Below are positions 5,445 to 64,000 of a DNA stretch of 64,000 bases, piece by piece. Source of the stretch: Perna viridis. Taxonomy: Eukaryota. The translations under genes and the position numbers were made by a program. Numbering within the stretch: the first letter of the stretch is position 1; every line of letters begins with the position of its first letter. The stretch covers positions 59,898,862-59,962,861 of the forward strand of contig CM074511.1 in the NCBI GenBank assembly GCA_037379345.1, read 5' to 3'. The notes under the pieces were generated by a model, which did not search any database, had not been told where the DNA came from, and saw nothing but the letters and a program-made list of their open reading frames with translations.

Positions 5445-7815
5445 ATTCCAGTTTCAACAATAGATATTTTAATGCTCATGTTGTAATAAAGGTATAATTA
5501 TGTACATGCCTACTGGAAACAAATGTTGCATAATGTTTGACAAAGAAGGCACAAAAGCAGCACAAAAATCTGAACACAATACAGGTGACATGGTTACAAA
5601 ATGTACAGGTATACTCTACATTGAAGGTATCCCTGTTCAACTAATATTATTAAAAAACTCACTCAATGGAAAGAGCACAAATACATGATGAAAGTACGGA
5701 TAACAAAATTATTTTTTTATCAACATGGAAACTCTCATTGTAAGATATAATAAACCAGAACTTATTGTTCACATTTTGTGACCTTCCAAAAAAATTGTTT
5801 TTGCTATTTTTTCAGGAACTGCAACAGATGCTTTAAATAAAAGTTTATTTCTGACTTCATAGTATTTGAATAATTGTACATGAGAAGTATACCATTTATT
5901 GCTAGGAGTTACTTTTTATTTTTTTAATACTGGTAATAGTTTTTTTTTGTTCATAATGCCTATGGCATTCCTTTACAATTTCAGAAAACAAATAACCCTG
6001 GTTTGAAGAGCACACTTACCATCTCTATAAATAAATGAAATATGGGGCCATAATGTAGTAAACCACAAGTTTTCTACAATTAAAGACCAAGATTTTTCAC
6101 TTTTAACAACTTCAAAGTGTTTAACTTAAGTTTTTTAAAGTTTGTGACCAAAACCTACTTAGAATATATTACTATTTATACATGTAGAAATATATCTATA
6201 CTCCCCTATCCTATAGTTTAAACCTTTACTCAAGTGTTTACAAAACAAGTACAGTGTATACAGTAAAACATTATAAAATCAGCACTAGTTTTATAACAAT
6301 TATGTACAGAAAAATTATATACACACTTAAACTTTATACATATAATCTATAAAATTATAACATTGTAAAGTTTTAAAATAATTGCTAAGGTTGTCAACAA
6401 AGAAAGACATCACTACTTATAATCCTTGATTTGAAAACATTTTGGGTGTACTTGAAATGTTCCTACATTGAGACAAACATGTATAATGACAGTATCACTG
6501 CTGTAAATAACTACAGTGTCAACAATCAAAGCTCTCACAAAACAACCATCAATACTTGACTGTCTCTCATGTATTGTTTCACTTTCTGCTTAGATGTTTA
6601 CCAGTATGACACACAAGATGAAATACTTTTGAATGATATTGTATTCATTATCTTCAGAAAGTAAACAATGTTTACTTTAGCTTTGTTTGCTATGATACAG
6701 AACTGAAAATTTGAATGATAGAGAAACTATACTATACATGTCATTATTTGTAATCAACTATCTACTATGAAATAAATACTTAAGTGACTGACCATGACTT
6801 ACATTACCAACATACATCTACTTTCATGTTACCAAAGACTACATTGTTGTACATGTATGTATAAATTTGTTAAGTAATTTACATACATGTACATGTGTAT
6901 GTGTGAGTACATAACCAAGAGTATCCTGATTTTTATGACTAGAATCCATACATTTATATTTAACTTAATGATAAACGAGCTATACCCTGACAGTTAAAAT
7001 ATTGAATACATATTTACATATGATGGTGCTGGAGTATGTACATATGCTAATGACTCATAAGATGTAAGAAAGTATGACAGAGACTTCAATAATTTATCTT
7101 CTTTCAACAAATACAGTCGCCATATTTCAAAATTCATTCTTTTTAGATTCAACACCCCAAACATCCTGTTTTCTTAGATCAATCTTCTCAATGAATCAAC
7201 TTTTCAGGCATTTCACAACATTGAATTGATCATATCTTTAATTTTTAAAAATGTAATTTTGCAGACATTACACAGAATGTGATAGCAGTTCCTGACAATC
7301 TATGATGAAGTTTGGCACATTGTTGAATACATGATACAGTTACTTTTACAACACCTATGTCTGACCAAATACAATTATTGAAAGTTCAAGGGTGAAAATG
7401 CAATATTCATATTGGATTTTGATTTCTTTTTTTTTCTAAAGTAACAACATTCTGGTAAATAAAATTTTAAGGAAAAGAAAAATAAAAAAGTTGGTATACT
7501 GACAGAAAAGGTTAAGAAATATCAGACATATCTGAGCAAAATTCATTTTGAATTTTAGTTTTGGCATCAAAAACTGCCAAATAATTTGTCAAATTTTCTT
7601 ACATTAACATAGCAGAAAGTCAGGTCATTGTATATGTAATCACTATTGAATTTTGATGCAATAGTACAAGCATAATGTACTAAAAGTATCAATATTATGA
7701 AAATTTCACTAAATGCTTCTCATCTAAAATTGTATTAAAATATTATCATAAAATTTTGATTGTTGTGTATTACAAGTACCTTAATTACGATACACATAAA
7801 TGGTACATAATATCA
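5445..7815 (-). other. Probable prickle 3' UTR (~2.3 kb)
   Basis: U/G-rich on the minus strand; ATTAAA at 5468-5473 followed by a GU/U-rich tract (ttttgtctttgttagtatttttgtgtttt); an alternative AATAAA lies at 5844-5849. The 3' end is inferred. Confidence 0.45.
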
Positions 7816-9183: not shown

Positions 9184-10289
9184 CTATAATGAAAGATGAA
9201 GGTGTTACTTCCTTAAAAACATAGTAACGGCTTTTTACACTTCTACATTTTAGAAATTATGTTCACTGTTCATTGCATCTCTATACATAACATATTTTTA
9301 AAGTTAAGTCATAAATGGTCCTTTCTTGGATTTTTCTGTAGTTATGGAGTTTTCCCTTTGTAATAAAAATAAACAGCTAATTCATGTATATATAACATTT
9401 TGCTTGTTGTACTGAAAATTATGATAAAGGATAAAAGCATATACAATGTAAAAGAACAAGTTCACTTTTTCTAAGGTTTTTCCTACAAAGAGTAACCTAT
9501 ACAACATCGATATAAAGATACTAAGTATTGGGACCCCAGACAATCTTCACAGGGAACCAGTTTTTTTATTTGTTATTAATGTATACAAGTCTAAGAAAAA
9601 AATCAAATATCCATCAATATAAAAATATATATTGGCGGAAGTCTAAGATCGACTATTGTGATAGTCTGAATTACTCAGTTCATTACAATTATTGTCCTCT
9701 AGAGGAATATATTATTAAGTGTCTGCAACAGATTGATTTTTTACACTGGTTATACAGTACAATAGTGCATCATACAACTTTTTGTGTTACCCTATCAGGT
9801 TTTATTATGCAGGATATGATCCCATAACACAGCCATATTAATTTCTGTCTGAAATTCCATTTGTCTAATAATGCCTTATTGGTCTGTATTTATGATCAAT
9901 TTATAGGTTGTGACCATTAATGAATTCCAATGAATATGTGGGTTTATGAATATAGAAGCAAATACCTAATACTGACATACTGTTACTTATGCAAAAGAAC
10001 TCATGTATGGGTAAAAAGTTCAGATCATGCAATGATAAAATCCCATGTCAATCTCCATCAATGTAGCGGTTGATCAATTTCATTTTAAAAGTGACTTTCA
10101 ATTTATTCTTGAGCACCTTACATGTACTTCAAATGATTTCCTGAACTGAATTCTTTCCCTACTGTAAATAGGTCAACTTTACTTTTTAAATTTTTTTGTA
10201 TAGTCAAAAATTGAGAATTTCTTCTCCAGGAGTTATTGCATCCTACGGTACAATTTACTTTACTTAATACACAGTTACACAACTATTAC

Positions 10290-10493: not shown

Positions 10494-11532
10494 CTGAAAA
10501 TGGAACAAACACAGACTGATAAGGTTTTTATTACTTAATGAAATAGCTCCTTATTTACAACCATTAACAGCTAGTCTACTTCTTACTGATGTACATTATA
10601 CTATTAGAGTTACCTCCCTTACACCAAACTGAACAGTTTTACAGGTCCTAATCATTAACCTGATTGCTGAACCAAGTCCTAGCTGAAAATGAATGTGTAT
10701 CATTTAACCATAATTTTACTCTTCACAGAGCCTTTAATTGTGCAGCAGTCTGATAATGTGCACTATATGCATAATAGGCTAATGCACCTAACTACACAGA
10801 TGCACTTAAGATATGGGAATAATTTAATTATAGCTATAAATAATACCCCAAGTAAAACCTATCCCTTTAAAATTACATGCTTTTGTTTAAAGCAGTTAAA
10901 TCTGCCCTTAAGCTTAAAGACAGGATTGTGACACGAAAACATTATTAAGTATTATTATATCAACTTACAGAAAATCTATAACTGAAACATTTATTTTATA
11001 AAAAAAAAGGTTATTCGGTTACCCAAATATGAATTTGACAAATTACAACAATCTTAAAGTTAAACCAGTATTTTTGATATTGGAAAAATGTCTTTACAGA
11101 TACAAAGCAGATCATCAATTTGAAGCGGTAATAGATCATTATACATTACTTCAGACCAGGAAAGTCGGAGTTTAATAGATGACCTTATATTTAATCATTG
11201 TGAATCTTTGGTATCTAAACTCTTTAAGTTCAAGGCATTTTAATTTTAAAAGTTAATTTGAACCCATGCTAAGCAAATACATAAACTACTTGAAAAGGTT
11301 GAGGATAATGTCCATCCTATAACATTGATAGTACGAATGAAAAGGCTTTTATAAGTAAAGCTGTGAATTATTCAGTTTAGGGCATAACAAAAAAAAAAAA
11401 AAAAAAAAACTGTGTTGAGTTAGTGATCATTCTGTGTAAGTCCTCATAAAAAATGATAAAATTTGTACAACCAGTATACTACTACATCCCTCATAATGTT
11501 TTTATTTTACTTTATTTTATTACATCAATTAC

Positions 11533-11784: not shown

Positions 11785-14467
11785 CTGAAAAATAAAATTT
11801 AGAAATTGATAAAACTTTTACAAGCTATAACCAGCACCAATTACTATAACTTAAAAAAAATAAAATGTGCTATTAATCTCCCCAATTTGCTGCCAGTCAC
11901 TGGAAGATGGATTTTTAAACAGTATGACTTGTACTGTTACCATGAATACAAATCCAATGTATTCTGCTAGCAATTATTTTTAAAAATCTATATTTAAGAC
12001 CCATTTTACATCAGTGTTTTGGAAAAAAAATTACGATGCAAGTATGCAAACAGTGCAAGAAAAGTGTACATCTGACCATACTTCAGGTAATAACATTAAC
12101 ATTTCTTATTTTTATCCAGCCCTCAATCAAATGCCCTGTTTATCTATCCTATATCATTCAACTTCACAATAAATTGTGCAACAATTACATGGTGCAGACA
12201 TAAAATATGATCAGGAAAATACTGTTATCAGGAAAATGAAGCCATTTAATTTTGCATCCACTATTTATCCAGCCCAGTGGCCCATTAAAAAAGCTGTTAA
12301 TTTATTTTACATCAAATAATAATACACCCTAAATACCTTTAATTCTTTATCACTGCCATAATATGATCTAATAACCTCAGAGAAACTGACATAATTTAAA
12401 GCCAGGGGTATATGATTTAAAAGTCTATCATGAAATTATGATGTTGTAACTGTTAATAATATACATTGGTTTTAACAGTAGTTTTCAACTTTCAGTGTAG
12501 TTAATTCAGCTTAAAAACTGGTATTCTTTTATACAGCAAGTGATTACAAAGCAGAAATCTAAAGAGTTAACTAAATTTATAGATTTACAGCTACCAGAAT
12601 TGGTCCAACCAATAAGTTTTACTACAAACTACTGGCAGAAAAAAAGGTTATAAGATTAATTGCTTCATTCAAACGATTAAACCAAATTTTTCAGTCTAAA
12701 GGAAAAAGTTATCAGCATTGACGACAAACTGGCTGAGATTTAGATATTTGTTTTCCTGCAATGACAATTAAACAACTGAAAAATTCTCGGTGATGCTCCA
12801 GGTCCTTAAAGTTAATTTTTGCTGTATTTAAATGAAGTGAAAACCTAAAACCAGTGTGTAAGATGAGCTAATACCAACATTGTAGAGCAAAAAATAATTT
12901 GACATTTAACATAATGAAAGACTCCAACTTAAAGATAATTTTTACACTTTTGTCATTCTTCACCTTTGTAAACAGATTATTGAAATGTATACTTCCAAAA
13001 TACAGCAATTATCTGTCTTGGCAAGGTCATTAGCACATCTTATCATAAATGATACAAAAATAGTCTGTTTTTAACTGGAAAAATGAGGTCCTTGATGGCA
13101 TAGTGGAGTTAAAATAGTCAGAGTAGACATATTACATGTTCAATAAAAAATACAAAGACAACAGGTAGTTGGAATTGACAAGAATTATGAAGACAGTCAG
13201 ACAAATTTAAAATGTTCATGTGATAAAGGGAGGATAAAATAAGTAAAACAAACATACAACAGGTTAAATGTAGAATTGCATAAAAACGAACAGATATTTC
13301 AAATGCAACAATAAGATAGTCAAGTTGTTTTGAGGCATCAAGATAACCAATATTTCATTATTTTTTTATTGTCTTGTGTGTCTGTTGTCTGAAATCTCAG
13401 AAATGTGTGAGATTTATGTCATGAATTCAAGAAAGGCAAACATTATCACCTATTTAAAATAACTGCTTGACTCTGACAGTTTAAAAATATCCTACATGTG
13501 CATTTAGCCTTAGCTTGGTGTACATGTACATCTGTTAGTATCTAATACCAGTTAGAGGAAATACTAATACTAAAAATTCTCTTCTAGATCATACAGATTC
13601 ATTTTGAACTCAGAGGAAATATTATGGTCATCTGAAAGACAAATACCCAGGATTATTTAGTTACTGACAAGATATGGAAAATAATAACAACAATGAGGTC
13701 AAGAAGTATGAAACAAGACACGGGTGGCACTGAGGCATCACCATTACTTTTTATAACCATATGGTCATGATGGTGATTAACATGTGCTCCTAATTTAATA
13801 ATAATTCAGCCTCATCTACATGTATATATATATGATGATGTACCCAGTACTTTCCTTCCATTAAGGTCCAGGAATACATACAGAAATACCAGTTGGTATT
13901 ATCACAAACTGCCTAAATCTCAGACAAATAGCTTCAAGTTCAATTTCATTTGACAAGCCAGTTTCAGAATATAGATTGACTTGTATAGCAAAATTATTAC
14001 AGTTACGTGATATCCCTTTAGAAATGGGTGAAAATCTGGGCAAAGTTACAAAATTCATCAAGTTTTTAATTAATAGAGAAAATTATATACCAAGGCTCTT
14101 GATGTAAGATTAATTGTATAATTCTGATAAGTTACAAAACTGGCCATAAAAACAAAAATATATAACTAATTGATGATTGACAGGTACTATAATCAGCTTT
14201 GATGTTGTGATATTTATACTGTTGGAAGGTATCAGACCCACACAGGATTAAATCAGAGAAGTAAACTAAAGCTATGTTAAGGTATGCAAGGGTTGGGGTT
14301 TCCAGCAATGTTAACCTAGAAGTGTGTCAGATATTACTGCCTGTTTTGATCTAATCATGATCAATCTTCAGTCAATTTATATAGCTGGTTGATACTGTAT
14401 CAGTTTGTAAATAAAAAATATCTATTAAGTCTACTGTAGCAGAGCATAGATTAATCTGATCAAAGAG

Positions 14468-17500: not shown

Positions 17501-18764
17501 TTAATAGGAAAAACTATTGAGTTTCTATATCCTCATGAAAGCTTGTTGTGAATTGTTTATTGACCTCAAGAGAGCTATTATGATACATGAGAACTTTAAT
17601 AAGGTAATTGTTGTGGGTATAAAATGACCATTAAATCAATTTCTGGAAATCCCTACTTTCTAAAAAAAATGTTGATATTGTTCTGATGGTACTGATTAAG
17701 ATGGAATATTGAACACTTTGATCAATTGATGAAGCACTTCACCATTGAAACAGATAGTATAGAGAAACAAAGCCTGCTCCAATACAGTACATAACCAATG
17801 AAGCAGAAGGCTGATCATAGACACTTTCATTTTAATTGACTTCAGGGAAAAAGAAGTACCCAGGGTGTTGCTGTCAGTCATCACCTTAAAAGGGATTTTG
17901 GAGCATCATACAACCTAGTAAAAGGAAAGAAAAAAGGCCATTAAAACTGAACATTCAGAGTACATTGAAATAATCACCTCTTTTTACCTACACCCAAAGG
18001 ATACATTGCTCTTTAGTATATCTCTGTGCTCTTAAGAACACCAATTCACACACATGCAGACCAACTGGTGAAGTTGGAAACATTTGATATTTGCTCAAAC
18101 ACAGAAAACTTAAAAACAAAGAATAAATCTTGAATATTTCTGACTCGGCAGTGTCTATTTTTTGGTTTGGAGAGTTATCAAATAAATCTTCATCCAAACT
18201 ACAGGAAAAGAAACTTACTTGAAACAACTCCTGTTTGATAAACATTCCCCCATAAGCAAGAGACTATCAAACAATGATTAGCTCTGTAAATCTTTGACAA
18301 GATATTGTCTACTGCAGTCAGTCATCTTGAATAGCAATTACTGAATCTTACAGCACAGAAACTTGGCACAAGACTTCAAACATCAAGGAGGCATTCAGGA
18401 TCTGCCTCATCTGAATGTCAAATTTAACAATGGGATAGTTAAGGAACAGATTTGTATAGATCATACCATGGATAATAAGGATAGTACAAATACTGGTTCA
18501 ATCAAATATTGGAAAATTACAGTGAGTGAAATAGTTTACCTAACAGGAAAGTGTGGTCTTCTTTTGATTGAAAGACCTGATGAGCTGCCTAAAGTAGTTA
18601 ACTGGACAACTGAAAAGATTTGAACTTTATATTATTTCATATGTCAGATACTCGGGCAGATAGAAATCTTTAATACATGTTAACTATCTAACATAGCTCT
18701 TTAGGTTACTTTAATGGTCATTCAATCTCTATCATCTGACATTAGCAATTTAACTAACTATGAG

Positions 18765-19010
18765 AAAGAGTAATCAAGGGAACCAAGGTTATAGCGGTAA
18801 TCAAAAGAATGTAATCCAGGGACAAAGACCAGACATGGAAAACAGACACACACAACAAAGAACATAAAGTAACTAAAATCATACATACAAAGTAACAAAA
18901 GTAAATGAGCAACTCGGACTCCACTAAAAACTGGGAGCATGGACCAGGTGCACCGGTAGGGTAAGCATCCTCTGCTTTTCTAGAAACACCCGCCGAGTTG
19001 CTCATAAAAA
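18765..19010 (-). mobile_element. ~245-bp interspersed repeat, copy 1, with structured core
   Basis: Closely similar to 59846-60088 and, inverted and partial, 60308-60466; internal 13-bp inverted repeat 18905-18917/18993-19005; element class and strand uncertain. Confidence 0.8.
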
Positions 19011-55248: not shown

Positions 55249-56347
55249 TTCTAACTAATCTAATAGGTAATCTAAACTACTCCTTGTAATTATCAGAAAC
55301 AGCACACAAAATACAATTGTGCTTATTTTGACAAGATATGTCTTGTCAGCATATACATCTTTTACATGCAAAGACAGGCCAGATTTCAACAAGAATCTTT
55401 AGATTATAAAAATCATTCATGTACATACAGTGTATATGAATGGAAGTGATAATCCCTCCCCCCCACCCCACCCCCCCAAAAAAAAAAAAAGATGCAGTAA
55501 AAAGTCTCTCATACATGTACATGGATGGGAACTGAACACCTTTTCACGGTAATCAAAGATCAGAAAATCACACACAGCATACAATAAATAGTTCAGGCAA
55601 CTGGTCCATTGAAAATTGACACATTGTTTCGTGTGACTTTAGTTTGATTAGTTAATTTGTATGAACTATATCCCAATTATAAAAGAAAAATATTTGTTCC
55701 GAATTTTAATTCTATATATTTTATGAGGTGGAAACTCAGACCTTTGTATTTTATCTTGAAAGAATTGTTTAAATAGAGAAAAAAAATTGACAAAGCTCAT
55801 TGACAATAAAATTTGAACTGTTATTTAAATGTCAGGAGGTATGGATAAGATATGAGACTGTAAAACCATATCTCTGCTCTGATATAGAGATAAAAAAAAA
55901 ATATATTGTTTCTTATGTGAACTGAACTTGTAATAATGGAGAAAGTTCTTGTTAAAATGTACATGTAGCTTCATATTAAGCTTATATCTAACATGTGCAG
56001 AGGTAGTCTAGATAAACATGATTTTCACTGAGGCATTTTTTTTAAATCAGACATGGGAGGCAACCAAGCAAAATGAAAATTAAGCCTCACAAAGATGGCA
56101 TATTTGAACCTGTACAGAGGGCATAAGTGTTAGTGGAACTTTTAAACTGAAACACAACTGATATTTTTTTCCAAATAAAATATGGTAAACATTCTAAAAA
56201 TTTCTGCCAAACTATGCTAAAACTAATCACTACATATTTGTACAGATTTAAGCATGTACATACTTCTGACAAGTTCTGTATCTATGATGTTTTTTTTTCA
56301 ACTGAACACAATTCTGGGGGATTCTATACATAAACTTTCTGACTTAC

Positions 56348-56436
56348 CTCCAATAATGAAGTTCAAACCCCGGACAGACATTGGGGCAGTTTGAGCAAGG
56401 CTTTCCAGCTTTTATCTGATGTGCTAACGGGGGGCT
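56348..56436 (-). CDS. prickle: prickle exon 2, first half of testin/PRICKLE3-like Cys-rich domain (SPPLAHQIKAGKPCSNCPNVCPGFELHYWR)
   Basis: ttattgcag| acceptor, AG|gtaagt phase-2 donor; the C-x2-C-x3-C-x-GF-x-LH-x-WR motif continues as KICKHCKC in exon 3, as in testin/LMCD1/PRICKLE3; missed by the ORF track. Confidence 0.93.
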
Positions 56437-56704
56437 CTGCAATAACAGAACAATGTAAATCAGTCATTTAATTTATTGACAGAAAATAAGTACTTGATAC
56501 TGTCATTAAAATATGAGAAATATTATTTCTTAAACTTTCGATGTTATCGTCGAATAATAACGTATTGACATAATTTAATACTATTTTGAATTATAGACCT
56601 GTGATTAATTACGGGTCTATGTAAGGACACGGCACGACAGCAGGTGCCCGTTTCAAAGTAGGACCACGACTGCCGACTTTGCTCTTATCATAAGTTTTAC
56701 TTAC

Positions 56705-56779
56705 GCAAGATGGAAGTCCTTTCTGGTCAAATAAAACTGACGGGCTTACTCTAGGCGACTGATCACCACAAGCAGCCAT
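56705..56779 (-). CDS. prickle: prickle short-isoform first coding exon (MAACGDQSPRVSPSVLFDQKGLPSC)
   Basis: agaATGG start, 25 codons, donor TGC|GTAAGT phase 0, 268-bp intron to the phase-0 acceptor of exon 2; lies in a CpG-enriched promoter-like zone. Confidence 0.75.
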
Positions 56780-57100
56780 TCTCAGTTACTAAGTCCACTA
56801 ACTGATCTTGTCAAAATATTTTCACATGTTCACTGAACAAATCACTCACATGTGCACGCTTACATCACAGAAAAATGGTCAGCCCCTTTTACACTTGTTA
56901 ATTTTAAATGAAAGTTTTCCAAACGAATCCAATTCGATAATTAGAATTAATATTAATTCCAAACTAAACAATAAATCCACCTGATAAAATTAGCAAGCCC
57001 TTCCAGGAGACTTTTCGACAAACGATAGAACAAGTCAAGATAATTTTAAACGCTCATGAATATCGGTCCCGCCCCTTATTGTAACGTCATTGAGGGATGA
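56780..57100 (-). promoter_or_regulatory. Proximal promoter and 5' leader of the short prickle isoform
   Basis: Local CpG enrichment; GC box GGGGCGGG at 57068-57075 and CRE-like TGACGTTA at 57082-57089; Inr-like TCAGTT at 56800-56805. TSS not determinable from sequence. Confidence 0.5.
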
Positions 57101-57599
57101 GATTTCCAGCTGTTGAGAACTATCGAATTTCATTGATTAATCTCTGATCGCATGTCTTCTGGTACTAATTACATAAATCCGATTACAATTCTTAATGAAA
57201 TCTTGAGTTTAAGTAATAATGAAATTTTATTTTAAATTTTTGTTTTAAAATAATATACTTTACAAGTTTAGCAGGAACTAAAGGCAATATAAAGCTTATA
57301 TGTATAAGAATTCACGTTCGAGAATTATTTAAGATATAGATAATAGAGTATTTCACTGCTATACACAGTGACTATATTACTTTCCCTGCTGCTTTAGGGG
57401 CATATATATTGTGACCAATTAAAAAAATATATATATAAAGTGATACCAAGATGTTAGATATAGACTCTTAAACTATAAAGATCCTTGGTAACATGTACAG
57501 TCATTTTTTAAATCGGGTATAAAAAAAATTTGCACCGCATACCGTGATCCCATTAGAAACGGAGTAAAAAAATAGAGGTAGAATTTTTGATAAATCAAG

Positions 57600-57665
57600 A
57601 TTTCATGCAAAAAAATCCAAATTTTAGGGAGGGCGCCGGATGTGCCCCGCCTGAATCCGCGTTTG
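57600..57665. mobile_element. GC-rich MITE end fragment
   Basis: gggagggcgccggatgtgccccgcctgaatccgcg resembles the ggatccgcccctg-type termini of common invertebrate MITEs; other end not found. Confidence 0.3.
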
Positions 57666-57995
57666 CACTTATAAGATTTATACTATAAAAGAACACACAC
57701 TAGCAATTTAAGGGACTTGGAGACATCCAAATTAGAAAAGTCGTTAAGCGGATTTGTCATATCATTTCATCCAAATTCGTAAACTTCGCATTTTCTAAAT
57801 CATTAGCTACTATCCTTACCAAGGTGTGCAGAGTTACCTCCCTTATCCCGATATACAATCATTATATACTCGCAAAAATCACTATCTACAGATTCATACA
57901 GGTTGATCTATCGTTGAGTGTTTACTAAAACTATAGTTTATCAAATTGAAGTTCATATATTATCCAGTGAAATAGAAAAATCTACTAATGTGTCT

Positions 57996-58063
57996 AATTT
58001 GTAATATTAGAAAATGAATTTGTAATATTAAAAAATCATTTTTTAATATTAGAAAACGCTCAT
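57996..58063. repeat. Minisatellite, 3 x 21 bp
   Basis: aatttgtaatattagaaaatg / aatttgtaatattaaaaaatc / attttttaatattagaaaacg. Confidence 0.8.
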
Positions 58064-59845
58064 TTTGTCCACTTTGGCTTGTCATAAAATATGTTATGAT
58101 TAGTAATAATAAAGAATTGAATGAATGTACATGAAACCATGTTTAAAAATATATTAAAATTTCCGTTTTCAATAAGTATATTCCAATTACATTTGACTTT
58201 TTATAACATTTTTGTGTTTTGAGAACATATTCTTCTTCAGTATTTTCATCATAACTTTCTTATTACTTATTTTTTTAAAAACTTATTCAAATTTTTAAAT
58301 AATTTCTTTCTTTCTTTTTTTTTGGTTTTTGTGTGTGTGTGTGTGGTATGTGTAAATGAAATGTAGAGTATTTAAGTTCAAAGTTTATCCTGTAGAAAGT
58401 CTGGGAAAGAAGTGTTATTGTTGTACATTATGTATACTTTCAGTTAGAAGTGACCAGTTCCCTGTATTATTAAGTCCCTACTACAAGTCTCTGTAATGTA
58501 TGTTTCTCTTAAATAAAATTATTGATGTCAATACTTATTCAATCTAATTAAAATTAAATCTTTAATTACGCTTCCTTCCATAAAAGCTTGACTTGGCACA
58601 TGTCAGATCGTGTATTTTAGAGCTGCATTAGCTGTCATTTCGTAAATTTTGTTTCTGTTGAAATATGCTTTAACTTTGAACTACTTCTACTAAATTGTAC
58701 TTTTCCTGAATAAATTCACTTGATATCCACAAATAAAATGCATTAAATACATGAAATAGTTGTCTATATATTTATTGTCTTAATTGCGAGACAAAAAAGA
58801 AATCGACCGAAACGAATTGGTATGCATGGGACTTCTGGTAACCTTAATCCGCGCATGTGCTGTAAAGGTCACTCCTTTTAAAAACAAATTTGTTTGCAAA
58901 GTGAAAGTGGTTAATCAACGGCATGGAAGACCGACGGGCTCAGGCCGTAAAAGAAAAAAAAAATGCGAATAGAACGGTAGGATCCTTTTGAAATTAATTT
59001 ACGTAATGTGATATAATGTGGCACAAATATGGTATTTTTTAACGAAGTGATTGTCCTGTCGGGAATCTTCGGAAGTAATGGCGATAAATAATTAGATCAG
59101 AGCTATCGGTCTTCTCTGATAAAAAATAACATTGTTTTCACAATATTCTGTTGGTATTATCGCAAATTGCTTCAATTGCATTACTAAAAACTTATTTCAT
59201 TGAATCAGCAAATTTCAGTAGAATCAGAACTGAACAAATTTGGCAGCTATTGCAGCTTTAATCAGATTGATACTCATTTACTATCCATCAGCAGTACAGT
59301 ATAGCAGATGGATCGACTTGAAGGAAGACAAAATGGATTGATTATTCAAGAATTGCAGCGTTGAACATCTTGCTTTAAATTTAAACACACCATACGACTG
59401 CTTGTGATATTATATACAATGTAGATTTATTGAATACTGTGGCATGCATTTTATTTTGTATATTTTTCACTTGCACTTGCATGTATAGAGAAAAATTGTA
59501 ACGGAGAATGTGTTACAAAAATAGAACCCTGTCAGACTGTGAAAAAAAAACCAAAGGCAGTCAATGGATGAGAACATATGCTCGGAGTCTGCCTTTATGA
59601 ATTGACTGACACACTTATATTATTAGCGGAATTGGCATCTGTATTCTTAAGCATTCAAAATCACACTTTCCTGATTTGGAACTGGTGCTATCTTTTATTC
59701 AGATAAATGACACATATATAATTAAGAATACTGAGAATTATGATAAAACACGTGTACAACAAGTAAAATATATCTAGTTATTATTAGGAGGTGCACTAGA
59801 AAATTTCATTTAACGTTATCACCCCGAAGAGAATTTTGTGTTACT

Positions 59846-60088
59846 GAGTAATCAAGGGAACCAAGGTTATAGCGGTAATCAAAAGAATGTAATCCAGGGA
59901 CAAAGACAAGACATGGAAAACAGACATTCACAACAAAGAACATAAAGTAACTAAAATCATACATACAAAGTAACAAAAGTAAATGAGCAACTCGGACTCC
60001 ACTGAAAACTGGGAGCATGGATCAGGTACACCGCTGTGGTAAGCGTCCTCTGCTTTTCTAGAAACACCCGCCGAGTTGCTCATAAAAA
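59846..60088 (-). mobile_element. ~245-bp interspersed repeat, copy 2
   Basis: Aligns along its length with 18768-19010 with about ten substitutions. Confidence 0.8.
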
Positions 60089-60307
60089 TGATACGGATAA
60101 ATTTGCACAAATTACTGAGATCAGAAAGATGTTGACTGCTCATTATAAATTACAAAATTTCATGATATTTGGTCTATTCTAAACTTAGTATCAAGGAACA
60201 AATTTCTTTTATCTATAGAGGCTGAACGTGTAAATAAATAGTGATATTTATCCCCTAAATCGTTTTCTGCACATTAAAGACACTTTCTGTCTTCCCTGGG
60301 TATGTTT

Positions 60308-60466
60308 TGGAGTCCGAGTTGCTCGTTTGCTTTTGTTAGTTTGTACGTATGATTTAAGTTACTTTATGTTCTTTGTTGTGTATGTCTGTTTTCCATGTCT
60401 GGTCTTTGTCCCTGGATTACATTCTTTTGATTACCGCTATAACCTTGGTTCCCTTGATTACTCTTT
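60308..60466 (+). mobile_element. Truncated inverted copy 3 of the same repeat
   Basis: Reverse complement of 59846-60002; shares the ...cccttgattactc end and lacks most of the structured core. Confidence 0.8.
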
Positions 60467-61037
60467 GTCATCTGCCAGTCTCTATGGGAAGTTTGTGATT
60501 CATGTTCCTAAATATCTTAATAAAGTTTTTATATTTCTATTATCCAAAACATTGAAATAATAATCTAGTTCATTTTTTTCCTTTATAGATCTGTAATTTT
60601 GAGATTTTGACGAAGTTTGAATATTAGAATGCCAATGCTGTTTGACTGAATAGTATGTCCATTCAACATTAAAATATTATGGAAGAAATACATACCAATA
60701 ACCACATTTATTAAGAACAGTTTTTGACAAAGTTAAACCACGTAGTGTTACCAGTGTATTACTTATACAGAACTGCAGGAGTCTTGTGTTGTTTGCCGGT
60801 GATTAAATTTGCCCAATATTTTATAATTCTCAAATGGTGTCTCCCTTATTCACCATAAATCATAAAATCATGTGTAAATTTCTTTGCATTCAGAAGAATT
60901 TTGCTAACTTATATGCGACTTATAAATATCATACATATATGTAACTACTTTAGTTACTCAGGCGTTCGAGAAAAGGACAAATCGGTCAATATTCAATGGA
61001 TACTAAGTCGTATTTGCAGGGATACCTATCTACTTAC

Positions 61038-61823
61038 CCTCTCTTCACCTTCGAGCGACATAGGTATAATGTCCTCCATACTCGTTTTTAACATGTCAAT
61101 CTGTTGTTGGTTTTCATATATTGGCTCTGATTTTAAACTGGGAACTTTCCTTTTTACGTATAAGCGATAGGTTTCGTCCGGTACTAAACCTTTTGTGATG
61201 GTTCCTATCTTCTTAGGATTCCAGTTTACTGGTTCTTGACATCTTTCGTTACCAGTATAAAACAAACAAGGCGATGTATTACAGATCTTATCCAAGTTGT
61301 CAATGCTATTTCCAATTTTCCGGGCAGAATTTAAATCTTCAGAATAAAATAGAATTTCTGTTCTTTCTTTGGCGATTTCGTCATTGTTGTTTTCAAAGAA
61401 AGATGTCATACTTTTTCTTCTTCTTGTTCTAGCGTTAAGCTTGCTACTCGATTTATCGTCCTTCCCTTTTCCAATGCTCAGTTGTATTTTATTGGGACTA
61501 AGCTGTGCATGAGTTTCTGAGCTAGCTTTGTCACTATCGGAATTGCGGTTAAAATTTGCAGACTTGGTTTTCTGACTGCGTTTTTGTAATTCCTTTAGTT
61601 TGAATTTTCTCAAAGTCTGACGGAATCTTTGTTTTCTATTCATTGAATTCATTACCTTAGCTTCCTCAGAATGATGTGATAAATCGTTAATGTCATCTGG
61701 TTTTGAATTTTCAACCGAATCCAGATACATATTGATTCTATGAAGAAATGGTAAATCCGAACCCGTGCCGAAAAATGGCATCTGATGTGAGCATAAAGAA
61801 GTAATACCTGTTACGTCAACCAT
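61038..61823 (-). CDS. prickle: Putative alternative (long) first coding exon of prickle, 262 codons, low-complexity basic N-terminal extension
   Basis: 798-nt ORF, far longer than background ORFs here. ATG in strong context (acaaaATGG). Codon 262 (AGG) is followed by GTAAGT, a phase-0 donor three codons before the stop, and the nearest recognised downstream minus-strand acceptor (prickle exon 2 at 56436) is phase 0. Coding status is fairly well supported; linkage to prickle is inference. Confidence 0.65.
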
Positions 61824-64000
61824 TTTGTTTATGATTGCAGCTCACTCTTACTCAGTTACGGAATGAGAATCGATGAGTGAGATTGTAAAGTTTTTCCATT
61901 AATCGATTTTTGAAAAACATGTTCCATTAAAAAGTATCCTTAATATAAGATCAATATTTAACCGTATTGGTTGCTTTGATCACGCTAAATAGAAAGTTAC
62001 TAACTTCCTGGGAGAAATATCAGGAAGCTTGATGGACCAGTATGATACTAGCAATTAAAAACACCCGACAATAAACCGATGTAATTAAAGAAAAATATTG
62101 TCTTTGCATCAGAATCCAGAAGGAAATCTGGGAAATAGTTTTAGATGAAAATAATATTACATAATTGCCGAAAATGATCCAAATGCAACCACTTTCCACA
62201 CAGCGAAATGGTTAATTACTAATATTTGAAATGCTAGAACAATATTCTTAATTCATCAATCTGGTAGAAGAGCGTTAAAACACACCGTATTTCACCATGG
62301 CGTTTGCACATGCAACAAGCCGCAAATAATTCATATACCACAAAACCGGATCAAGGTAATCCACCTTACTTAGAGATTAATCCATTTAGAGAAGCCAGTT
62401 GGTGGGTTTTTGATACCAAAACTTGGATTATCAACAATATAATTAAAATTTGTCCTATCAATTATTTCATCCAGTCATTCCAGGTAGGAAAGTAGAATGG
62501 AGTGTTGTTATATCCAACATGCAGTGACTGAATGGAATAATTGATAGTCCTAATTTTAATCAGATTGGACTATCAACTTGTTAGAGGTAAAAATTTTAGA
62601 CCTGAAATAGTAAGACCCTGACCACAACAACTATGGTTACACTTCAGAGCAGTGCTATAATTTCTGAGTTTTGTTAATCGCTGTCTGGTTGAAAAGTACT
62701 TCCATGATTCTTTAGTTAAACCAGTAAATATCTTGCAAACTACAAAGTTTGATGAGATAAGAGCACTAAGTTTTTAAGACGGACCTAGTTGTCAAATTCA
62801 AAGGCCTTAAAAATCGAGAACCTGTCAGTTTTACGGCAGATTCAGAAAAGAGAAAAAAAACCACATAGGAAATATTAGACTTACACGTGATACATTACAG
62901 AAAATGTTTGTAGTATATAACATAGAAAAGCAAACAGTATTAGCTGTCACGTGTCCATCCATTATGAAAGCGATTTCCCGTGCTTTACTACCAAGGGTTA
63001 CTGTTTCCATCATTGGCTGTGTCAAATCAAATAAAATAGTGAATACAGAAATTTAACATCTGACTTGCTCAATGTACCTTCAATGACATAATTCCATTCA
63101 ATTAAGCAGTGTTAGATACTATTCACGTCTTCTGTTCCATATTAGGTTTGTGAGAAACAAAGCTTGTATGTGTACAATGAGCTGATATTCGCCATTCTTA
63201 CGAGTTCGAATTAATTTTTTTTCATGGCCGAATTTTTTTTCTATATCGATCGGATGTCGAACAGTTGAAGAAGTCTAAGTATGGTATGAATTAGTCTAAG
63301 AGCACTAGTACCATCATTTCCCTTTGTTCACCAGTATTGTACAAGATATTGCTGCATTAACTTTTATTACAGCAGTCTTTTACTTCATTCTTACTTGTAT
63401 AAGAACTAGATTTATACTGTTACGAACTAAACACCGGAAGCCCAAGTTGACGTGTTGTCGTAGTATACATAATTGTATTTTCATTCACATTTTTTATTTT
63501 TATCTGTACCAATAGTGTGATATCCATGCCAACATGCTCTGATTTTCGGTTTCACATAAGGTACACCATGGTGCTTTTTATGTTCGTGTGTGCATTACCA
63601 TAGTGCATGGGTAGTTGTGGTTTAAAGATACGGATAATCCAGACTTAATCGTATAATCTTTCAAATCCAATTAAGTTTGTATCAATTTTGATCTTAATTT
63701 CCGTCATAAAGGGATTTAAAATTCCTGATGGTCTTATGTTTCATTTTCATTTTAATTAAATTTTCAGTAAATCTGATCAGTTTTCGTGGGAATTGGCTTC
63801 GAGTAGGCGCCTTTTCTGGGGACAAAGATAGATAACTCCGATTTGAATAAAGAGTATTTTTTAGCGAATGAGCCATTGAAACATTTTATTATGAAAATTG
63901 GAAGACATTGGAAAATACAGGTAGATATATATATATATTATAGATACATTGTTTTGAGCGCTTCTGGGAAAGATTGCGAATGAAATCTGGAAGTAATGAT

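Follow-up and report, generated by a model that had tools for sequence, protein, structure and literature searches.

The prickle locus of Perna viridis and an upstream orphan exon

We analyzed a stretch of 64,000 nucleotides (nt) from the mussel Perna viridis (GenBank assembly GCA_037379345.1, contig CM074511.1, positions 59,898,862 to 59,962,861), hereafter the window, whose minus strand holds a complete prickle gene and, upstream of it, an orphan open reading frame (ORF) of 262 codons that could serve the gene as an alternative first exon (Table 1). The prickle gene has six coding exons, which encode a PET domain, three LIM domains after it (the arrangement of the prickle class) and a CaaX end. 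Pfam models matched both types of domain (PET at E 7e-6 with exon 3 alone, LIM at 1.3e-15), and the last exon terminates in ...KNKQCVIS and a stop codon, a CaaX prenylation box; that Prickle proteins are prenylated is well established. In tblastn searches, a 722-amino acid (aa) protein derived from the mRNA of a congener (P0006) covered all six exons. The last exon shares 95% identity with this protein and 84% with the Mytilus edulis protein XP_071153374, annotated as 'prickle planar cell polarity protein 3-A-like isoform X1'. Homologues of the short first exon form the N-termini of P0006, P0129 and P0007 and occupy positions 11323-11397 of a 51-kb mytilid contig (L003). The protein sequence of exon 2 is 100% identical to that of L003 12466-12555, with 16 synonymous changes between them, and its acceptor is in phase 0 in both. 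Exon 3, on the far side of the 26-kb intron 2, is in phase 0 too. The boundaries of the internal exons are approximate, because concatenating the exons of the short form gave no unique solution.

An initial annotation of the window had read the orphan ORF as an alternative long N-terminus of prickle, spliced to exon 2 in place of the short first exon, in a switch comparable to that between the Pk and Sple isoforms of Drosophila. Rereading the sequence returned the same figures for the ORF, its ATG context (aaacaaaATGg, with an in-frame stop 6 codons upstream), its AGG/GTAAGT donor at a codon boundary, the gap of 4601 nt and the 25-codon first exon of the short form. The sizes of 959 aa for the long form and 722 aa for the short one follow arithmetically (262 + 722 - 25). 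The support for a long isoform presented here is comparative throughout.

Table 1. Features of the prickle locus in the window (approximate positions are marked ~)
Feature	Positions	Strand	Basis and remarks
Conserved non-coding element (250-550 nt before the start of the ORF)	62082..62380	-	Several TAATTA cores; candidate promoter-proximal regulatory module
Probable transcription start region and short 5' UTR (untranslated region) of the ORF exon	61824..61908	-	RNA contig end and AAATCGAT motif
Orphan coding exon, 262 codons, ATG to phase-0 donor	61038..61823	-	Homologues, selection, chance expectation
Splice donor GTAAGT after AGG, phase 0	61032..61037	-	Seen in the window; homologous donors in Mytilus, L003 and L027
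Putative long-form intron, 4601 nt	56437..61037	-	Encloses the promoter and first exon of the short isoform, and an inverted repeat pair; single-intron splicing putative
Conserved promoter block of the short isoform	57039..57188	-	Identity of 80% with L003 (123 nt) and of 67% with Mytilus (470 nt, 5' UTR included)
prickle short first exon, 5' UTR and 25 codons	56705..57044 (coding sequence 56779..56705)	-	Donor TGC/GTAAGT; start of the dominant mRNA
prickle exon 2, SPPLAHQ...CPGFELHYWR	56347..56436	-	Phase-0 acceptor after ttattgcag, phase-0 donor; proposed target of the ORF donor
prickle exon 3, PET start	~29720-29544	-	Stop-free stretches, Pfam, tblastn of P0006; approximate
Two middle prickle exons	~11787-11520 and ~10496-10263	-	Same basis as exon 3; approximate
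prickle last exon (LIM2-3, C-terminal tail)	9183-7819	-	Ends in CVIS and a stop

Homologues of the orphan ORF and selection

The open frame around the ORF runs for 271 codons, a length expected about 3e-6 times in the window at its GC content of 31%; the second-longest open frame outside prickle has 129 codons. The ORF is present in a single copy in the 723-Mb genome. For the database searches, the ORF and the prickle exons were queried separately. At the protein level, phmmer compared the ORF with 1.84 billion cluster representatives and returned four true relatives, all of them ORFs in mussel DNA: P0001 (from P. viridis itself), P0002, P0003 and the fragment P0004. An alignment-based profile search matched only P0002, P0003, P0001 and an extra homologue, P0181. 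P0002 is 98% identical to a stretch of M. edulis chromosome OY782956.1, and P0003 and P0181 represent two further, closely related mytilid species. The internally repetitive protein P0005 also matched at the threshold (E 1e-3) and was taken for chance, and a scan of metagenomes with the ORF alignment found no relatives. Judged from these matches, the orphan exon is confined to Mytilidae among the sequences found. None of the annotated mollusc proteins, including those of four RefSeq Mytilus proteomes, contained the ORF, whether within prickle or as a separate gene. With no NCBI protein carrying it, every hypothesis has to assume a low level of expression in the Mytilus material sampled.

All homologues share an N-terminal block, TSLCxHxMPFFGTGSDxPFLxRxNxYLxSVENxK, together with a basic stretch (DRKxRxR), and the conserved N-terminal motif extends over approximately 45 residues. 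A PIYEN sequence near the C-terminus is common to P. viridis and Mytilus. Beyond these motifs the ORF is rich in serine, lysine and asparagine and has accumulated many indels, so that homologues range in length from 149 to 262 codons. The peptide is predicted to be mostly disordered, with a basic helix; its AlphaFold model has a mean pLDDT of 43 and helices at residues 23-39 and 63-91. The conserved N-terminal region evolves under strong constraint, with omega values (the ratio of nonsynonymous to synonymous change) of 0.16-0.18 over the first 45 codons in distant pairs. Over the full ORF, omega is 0.42 between L003 and L027, a contig from a close relative of the L003 species. Polymorphism points in the same direction: the 15 haplotypes available for the L003 species vary at 4 of 447 sites in the ORF versus 25 of 654 in its flanks, a four-fold reduction, and three of the four ORF variants fall at third codon positions.

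These observations bear on whether the ORF could be a chance open frame or the remnant of a mobile element. It matched no Pfam family, a search of the ESM Atlas returned nothing, its predicted fold is not confident, and repeats abound nearby. Yet a single copy, syntenic in P. viridis, M. edulis and L003, under purifying selection and of a length so rarely expected by chance, has effectively refuted such an origin, to which we assign next to no probability. On this comparative evidence, we conclude that the orphan ORF is a genuine, unannotated protein-coding 5' exon under selection.

A conserved splice donor ends the ORF

In the window the ORF ends in GAGAGG/GTAAGT, its last base falling on a codon boundary. 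The homologous donor is AAG/GTAGGT in Mytilus, where it is invariant in six haplotypes, and CAG/GTATAT in both L003 and L027. Hence a phase-0 GT has been kept at the homologous end of the ORF in four lineages, despite the lack of conservation in the residues that precede it. Between L003 and L027, divergence is 6.0% without any indel across the ORF, rises to 27.5% in the 69 nt past the GT and is accompanied by indels in the next 200 nt. The first in-frame stop past the donor also drifts, lying 3 codons into the putative intron in P. viridis, 2 in Mytilus (21 in one variant that lacks that stop), 22 in L003 and 8 in L027. The jump in divergence at the GT and the drifting stop show that functional constraint ends there, as it does at an exon-intron boundary. 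Furthermore, GTAAGT occurs in the window at a frequency of 2.5e-4 per position, so its presence at the last codons of the ORF is not attributable to chance. From this pattern, the donor is very probably genuine.

Linkage to prickle and the choice of splice partner

Linkage to prickle in related genomes had been set beforehand as a test of the initial proposal, and the ORF passed it at the two loci for which downstream sequence is available. In the M. edulis locus (L028, a stretch of chromosome OY782956.1), the ORF at 249-1031 is followed by the ATG of the short exon at 10001, 9 kb on, by exon 2 at ~11739 and by exon 3 at ~39885. In L003, the same-strand order is ORF (6154-6600), short first exon (11323-11397, 25 codons and then GTAAGT), exon 2 (12466-12555) and the conserved elements of intron 2. 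The ORF thus precedes the short first exon by 4.7-9 kb on the same strand in both, and in the window, M. edulis and L003 alike it has the position and orientation of an alternative first exon of prickle. Its phase-0 donor is compatible with the phase-0 acceptor that exon 2 has in P. viridis and L003.

The interval between the ORF and prickle offers little else to splice to. The initial annotation had found no other convincing minus-strand coding exon there, and we concur: the open frames between 61.0 and 57.1 kb are of ordinary background length, and no block between the ORF and the short-exon promoter was conserved in pairwise comparisons of the window with L003, the window with Mytilus, or L003 with Mytilus, with the caveat that tblastx is blind to short, fast-evolving exons. 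A donor that seems genuine and for which no partner exon of its own was identified could nonetheless belong to the first exon of an independent, mytilid-specific orphan gene, and run to a short, fast-evolving 3' exon located before the prickle promoter. This reading accommodates the fact that no prickle protein in the databases searched carries the ORF, as well as the presence of a conserved element upstream of the ORF that could be its own. A private exon could also hide from view, as the C-terminal two-thirds of the ORF itself are invisible to tblastx between species. Against it, the interval provides no candidate second exon, with open frames of background length and nothing conserved in the three-way comparisons; none of the four annotated Mytilus genomes has a gene model for it; and an independent gene does not require the tight same-strand linkage observed, with a gap of just 4.3-9 kb across a deep mytilid divergence. 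We consider such a gene rather unlikely, though it ranks second among the readings, after a long N-terminus of prickle.

RNA evidence over the ORF

We compared contigs and read depth over window positions 56300-62250 in four sequencing runs labeled 'RNA?'. Contigs of 4556, 4778 and 1188 nt start at 56824, 57019 and 57011, respectively, extend to the donor at 56705 and leave the genome there. Exon 2 is covered at the depth of these main contigs over exactly 90 nt. Together, the exit at the donor and the matching depth of exon 2 demonstrate that three of the four runs are RNA. Coverage of the ORF consists of short contigs at approximately 3x, compared to 9-22x for the main mRNA. Three of these contigs come from run X1 (61088-61253, 61482-61715 and 61697-61867) and one from run X7 (61131-61313). 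ORF contigs were thus recovered from two of the four runs and are confined to 61088-61867, with zero depth on either side, and positions 60877-61075 have zero depth in all four runs. This pattern is consistent with weak transcription that begins near 61.87 kb and does not extend beyond the exon. None of the contigs in the four runs touches the donor of the ORF; the runs are therefore silent about the junction in either direction, whether splicing or read-through.

In run X1, positions 57096-57493 were covered at a depth of 12-17, similar to that of the main mRNA, even though they lie upstream of its usual start (~57020-57044). The sample may have used another start farther upstream, or its transcripts may carry a longer leader.

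Colinear contigs and the possibility of an intronless gene

Public assemblies contain many contigs that hold the ORF, and every one of them is colinear with the genome across the GT. Taken at face value, they would describe a small intronless gene whose transcript reads through the GT to a stop 2-22 codons on, encodes a disordered protein of 157-265 aa and is polyadenylated a few hundred bases downstream. An AATAAA hexamer is indeed found ~270-320 nt past the stop in P. viridis (60712-60707), Mytilus and L003, and three Mytilus contigs end 27 nt past it. However, the colinear contigs look like genomic DNA, and the 3' end shared by the Mytilus contigs abuts a single nucleotide polymorphism (SNP). 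The recurrent lengths of the ORF-bearing contigs (1926 nt and ~2.1 kb, reading through the GT) had suggested a defined, unspliced mRNA of 1.9-2.1 kb among the Logan/ENA contigs (L010-L024, L027), a candidate that we rejected because the contig ends reflect breaks in assembly. In the 1926-nt contigs, both termini fall within copies of one repeat (L003 5087 and 7004). Those of Mytilus extend from the edge of a repeat to the SNP, and one of them (L014) spans the upstream repeat with an indel. The P. viridis contigs run from 62546 into a hyper-abundant repeat at 60442; they are probably DNA, coming from runs that hold 64-88% of the whole stretch, with run identity inferred from run numbering. No spliced prickle contigs were found in the runs that yielded colinear ORF contigs; the spliced ones come from other runs. 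For these reasons, colinear ORF contigs were treated as uninformative on splicing. An intronless gene is also difficult to reconcile with a consensus donor that independent lineages share at the last codons, which is very unlikely by chance, with a tail past the GT that is unconstrained and variable in length, and with the zero depth of the RNA runs at 60877-61075. We regard it as quite improbable.

A further contig (L009, JGI) breaks inside the ORF and was considered as a splice product. It was rejected as such, for there is no GT at the break. On either side of a 300-nt core the contig departs from L003, and it probably represents a structural variant or a chimera.

Two repeats recur around the ORF. 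The hyper-abundant repeat forms an inverted pair in the window (~59680-60090 and 60280-60480), with a third copy at 18761-18979, and reaches a k-mer depth of 1e4-1e5 in the RNA runs. It contains an open frame (...SGVRVAHLLLLLCMYDFSYFMFF...) and many strand-switch joints, and assemblies break in it at 60442-60466. A short mussel repeat (...CCACGATATAACTGAAAYATTGTTGAAAGTGG...) occurs on either side of the ORF region, at L003 5040-5120 and 6960-7060, and its copies set the ends of many public contigs.

A candidate long N-terminus of prickle

By elimination and from comparative anatomy, the likeliest single reading of the orphan exon is that it supplies prickle with an alternative long N-terminus, though we adopt it tentatively and stop a little short of calling it probable. 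The exon would sit in the upstream regulatory territory of prickle, with a probable weak promoter of its own just upstream. Its donor would most likely use the next strong acceptor on the same strand, which is the phase-0 acceptor of prickle exon 2. The predicted product would be a low-abundance long isoform in which a disordered extension of ~260 residues, carrying the ~45-residue motif, replaces the 25-residue N-terminus of the short form. In this scheme we infer the promoter, the splice partner and any effect on the localization or the partners of Prickle. What stands of the initial proposal is thus a coding exon under selection, its conserved phase-0 donor and its linkage to the gene; the splice to exon 2 is putative.

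Several observations weigh against a long prickle isoform. The dominant prickle mRNA (4.5-4.8 kb) starts at the short exon, as do the mRNA contigs of two related species. The ~3x depth of the ORF is close to the sporadic intergenic background of the same runs (2-2.6x), exemplified by contigs of run X2 at 2.2-2.6x (59448-59603 and 60591-60835), and the ORF donor is untouched by any of the RNA contigs described above. Neither the 1.84 billion representatives nor the prickle and ORF clusters inspected contained a protein that joins the ORF to a PET-LIM body, and these sets take in four RefSeq Mytilus annotations that draw on much RNA-seq. The ORF is weakly constrained in Mytilus, with 14 polymorphic codons that change the amino acid versus 7 that are synonymous. 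Finally, tblastx between these species detects just the first ~36 codons of the ORF. As most of the ORF is too divergent for this method, a short, fast-evolving private 3' exon would be missed.

The orphan exon could also be transcribed with prickle without extending the protein, as an upstream leader exon spliced to the 5' UTR of the short exon or non-productively, in which case the ORF would act as a long upstream ORF or encode a separate peptide modulating prickle. The numbering of RefSeq accessions suggests that several Mytilus prickle transcript variants encode one protein, which would imply a multitude of alternative 5' leaders, and the extra transcription at 57096-57493 in one RNA run would suit a leader of this kind. 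But a motif conserved at the amino acid level and a frame that stays open for 149-262 codons argue for a translated, functional peptide. Moreover, a conserved phase-0 donor would have no purpose in a leader, and no acceptor is known in the 5' UTR of the short exon. This alternative therefore has little to recommend it, and we give it a low probability.

Upstream region of the ORF and other conserved elements

The non-coding element upstream of the ORF is one of the better conserved features of the region. By blastn it is 69-73% identical to L003 5578-5891 and to positions 756-1020 of a Mytilus contig (L002), with a further copy at ~500-790 of L027, and the four-species alignment contains long invariant runs. 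Its divergence between L003 and L027 is only 2.6%, whereas the ORF differs by 6% and the flanks by 18-27%. The four runs gave no RNA depth at 62071-62250. Its conservation makes the element a candidate regulatory module, enhancer or promoter, for the prickle locus. Closer to the ORF, a AAATCGAT motif lies 70-85 nt upstream of the ATG in the window (~85 nt), L002 and L003. In run X1, the outermost RNA contig (record 8) ends at 61867, and none of the four runs has any depth from 61872 to 62250, but contigs of this kind cannot map a start site. An Rfam match to the plant microRNA family MIR395 on the minus strand at 62452-62550 was below threshold (25.5 bits versus a gathering score of 56, E 0.064) and was taken for chance.

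The RNA contig starts at 57011-57044 are immediately preceded by the short isoform's promoter block. Three additional conserved non-coding blocks (55868-55642, 54399-54335 and 53732-53510) align with L003 at the 5' end of the 26-kb intron 2; the first of them aligns with Mytilus too.

Comparison with other prickle isoforms and known systems

In Drosophila, the N-terminus specific to Sple binds Dachs and Dachsous and reverses the polarity read-out, the balance between Pk and Sple decides which global cue the core planar-polarity system follows, and vertebrates are considered to lack the Sple isoform (PMC4764577). It is possible, although we find it rather doubtful, that mussels independently evolved a Sple-like switch, in which an upstream promoter and a long exon spliced in frame to exon 2 would retarget Prickle in certain cells or stages. 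The putative family motif of such a switch would be MPFFGTGSD.PFL..N.YL.SVEN.K plus the PIYEN sequence, a pYxN-like site. Coupling of the long form to Dachs or Dachsous, by analogy with the fly, would be pure conjecture.

The initial annotation had seen no recognizable similarity to Sple and had left open whether an equivalent switch would be ancestral or convergent. The first point was borne out. The prickle proteins of spiders (P0083, P0119), a Tribolium beetle (P0103) and a leafhopper (P0112) contain the motif C[KR]QWW[KR]VCW.YGDQ.K.YRQLYG, which we take to be that of the Drosophila Sple N-terminus. Searches for this motif in the window, L003 and L028 gave no match better than E 0.06, and no arthropod proteins were among the phmmer matches of the ORF. 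The absence of the motif and of arthropod matches indicates that the mussel exon is not a homologue of Sple, and no sequence links the two by descent. The architectures differ as well: the arthropod Sple-type N-terminus replaces the CPGF..H.WR segment and joins KVCRNCKC, of exon 3 type, directly, whereas exon 2 is the proposed partner of the mussel ORF. As phmmer matched only mytilid ORFs, an ancestral switch is unlikely. The long isoform, if real, is on this distribution specific to the mussel family and convergent with Sple. We also observed that the Sple-type N-terminus is common to chelicerates and insects, and it therefore appears to be arthropod-wide rather than restricted to insects.

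Mussels do have annotated alternatives to the short first exon of prickle. The Mytilus RefSeq isoforms comprise X1 (726 aa, with the short exon), X2 (711 aa) and X3 (687 or 657 aa), with XP_063435846 and XP_076096197 as examples of the latter two. The first exons of X3 and X2 (L028 16083-16124 and 33594-33725, respectively) lie in intron 2, join exon 3 and drop the CxxC...CPGFELHYWR segment; neither was detected in the window. Like the orphan exon, these predicted first exons give the mussel PET-LIM body different N-termini and, thus, provide a precedent for swapping the N-terminus of prickle. Unlike it, they are short (16-40 codons), sit inside intron 2 and join exon 3, whereas the orphan exon lies upstream of the whole gene, spans 149-262 codons, is conserved across mytilids and appears in no annotation. 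The orphan exon also resembles lineage-restricted orphan genes for disordered proteins in having homologues in one family, low complexity and fast evolution save for a short motif. It differs from them in ending at a conserved donor instead of a stop, and in its fixed position and strand 5' of one developmental gene.

A literature search retrieved no paper on prickle isoforms in molluscs. If the reading favored here is correct, an independently evolved long Prickle isoform in molluscs would point to N-terminus swapping as a recurrent way to rewire polarity. It would also supply a new conserved motif to test for binding partners, and would represent a convergent switch in Lophotrochozoa missed by current annotations. 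Even as a separate gene, the ORF would add an unannotated coding sequence under selection, one that the RefSeq Mytilus proteomes represented in the searched databases lack. The comparison with the prickle-spiny-legs locus of Drosophila, where alternative 5' exons produce Pk, PkM and Sple, has two sides. The mussel splice is putative, and the mussel N-terminus has no sequence similarity to that of the fly. Yet, as in Drosophila, a PET-LIM gene with a short first exon is preceded, farther upstream, by a longer candidate coding first exon whose donor phase fits the common exons.

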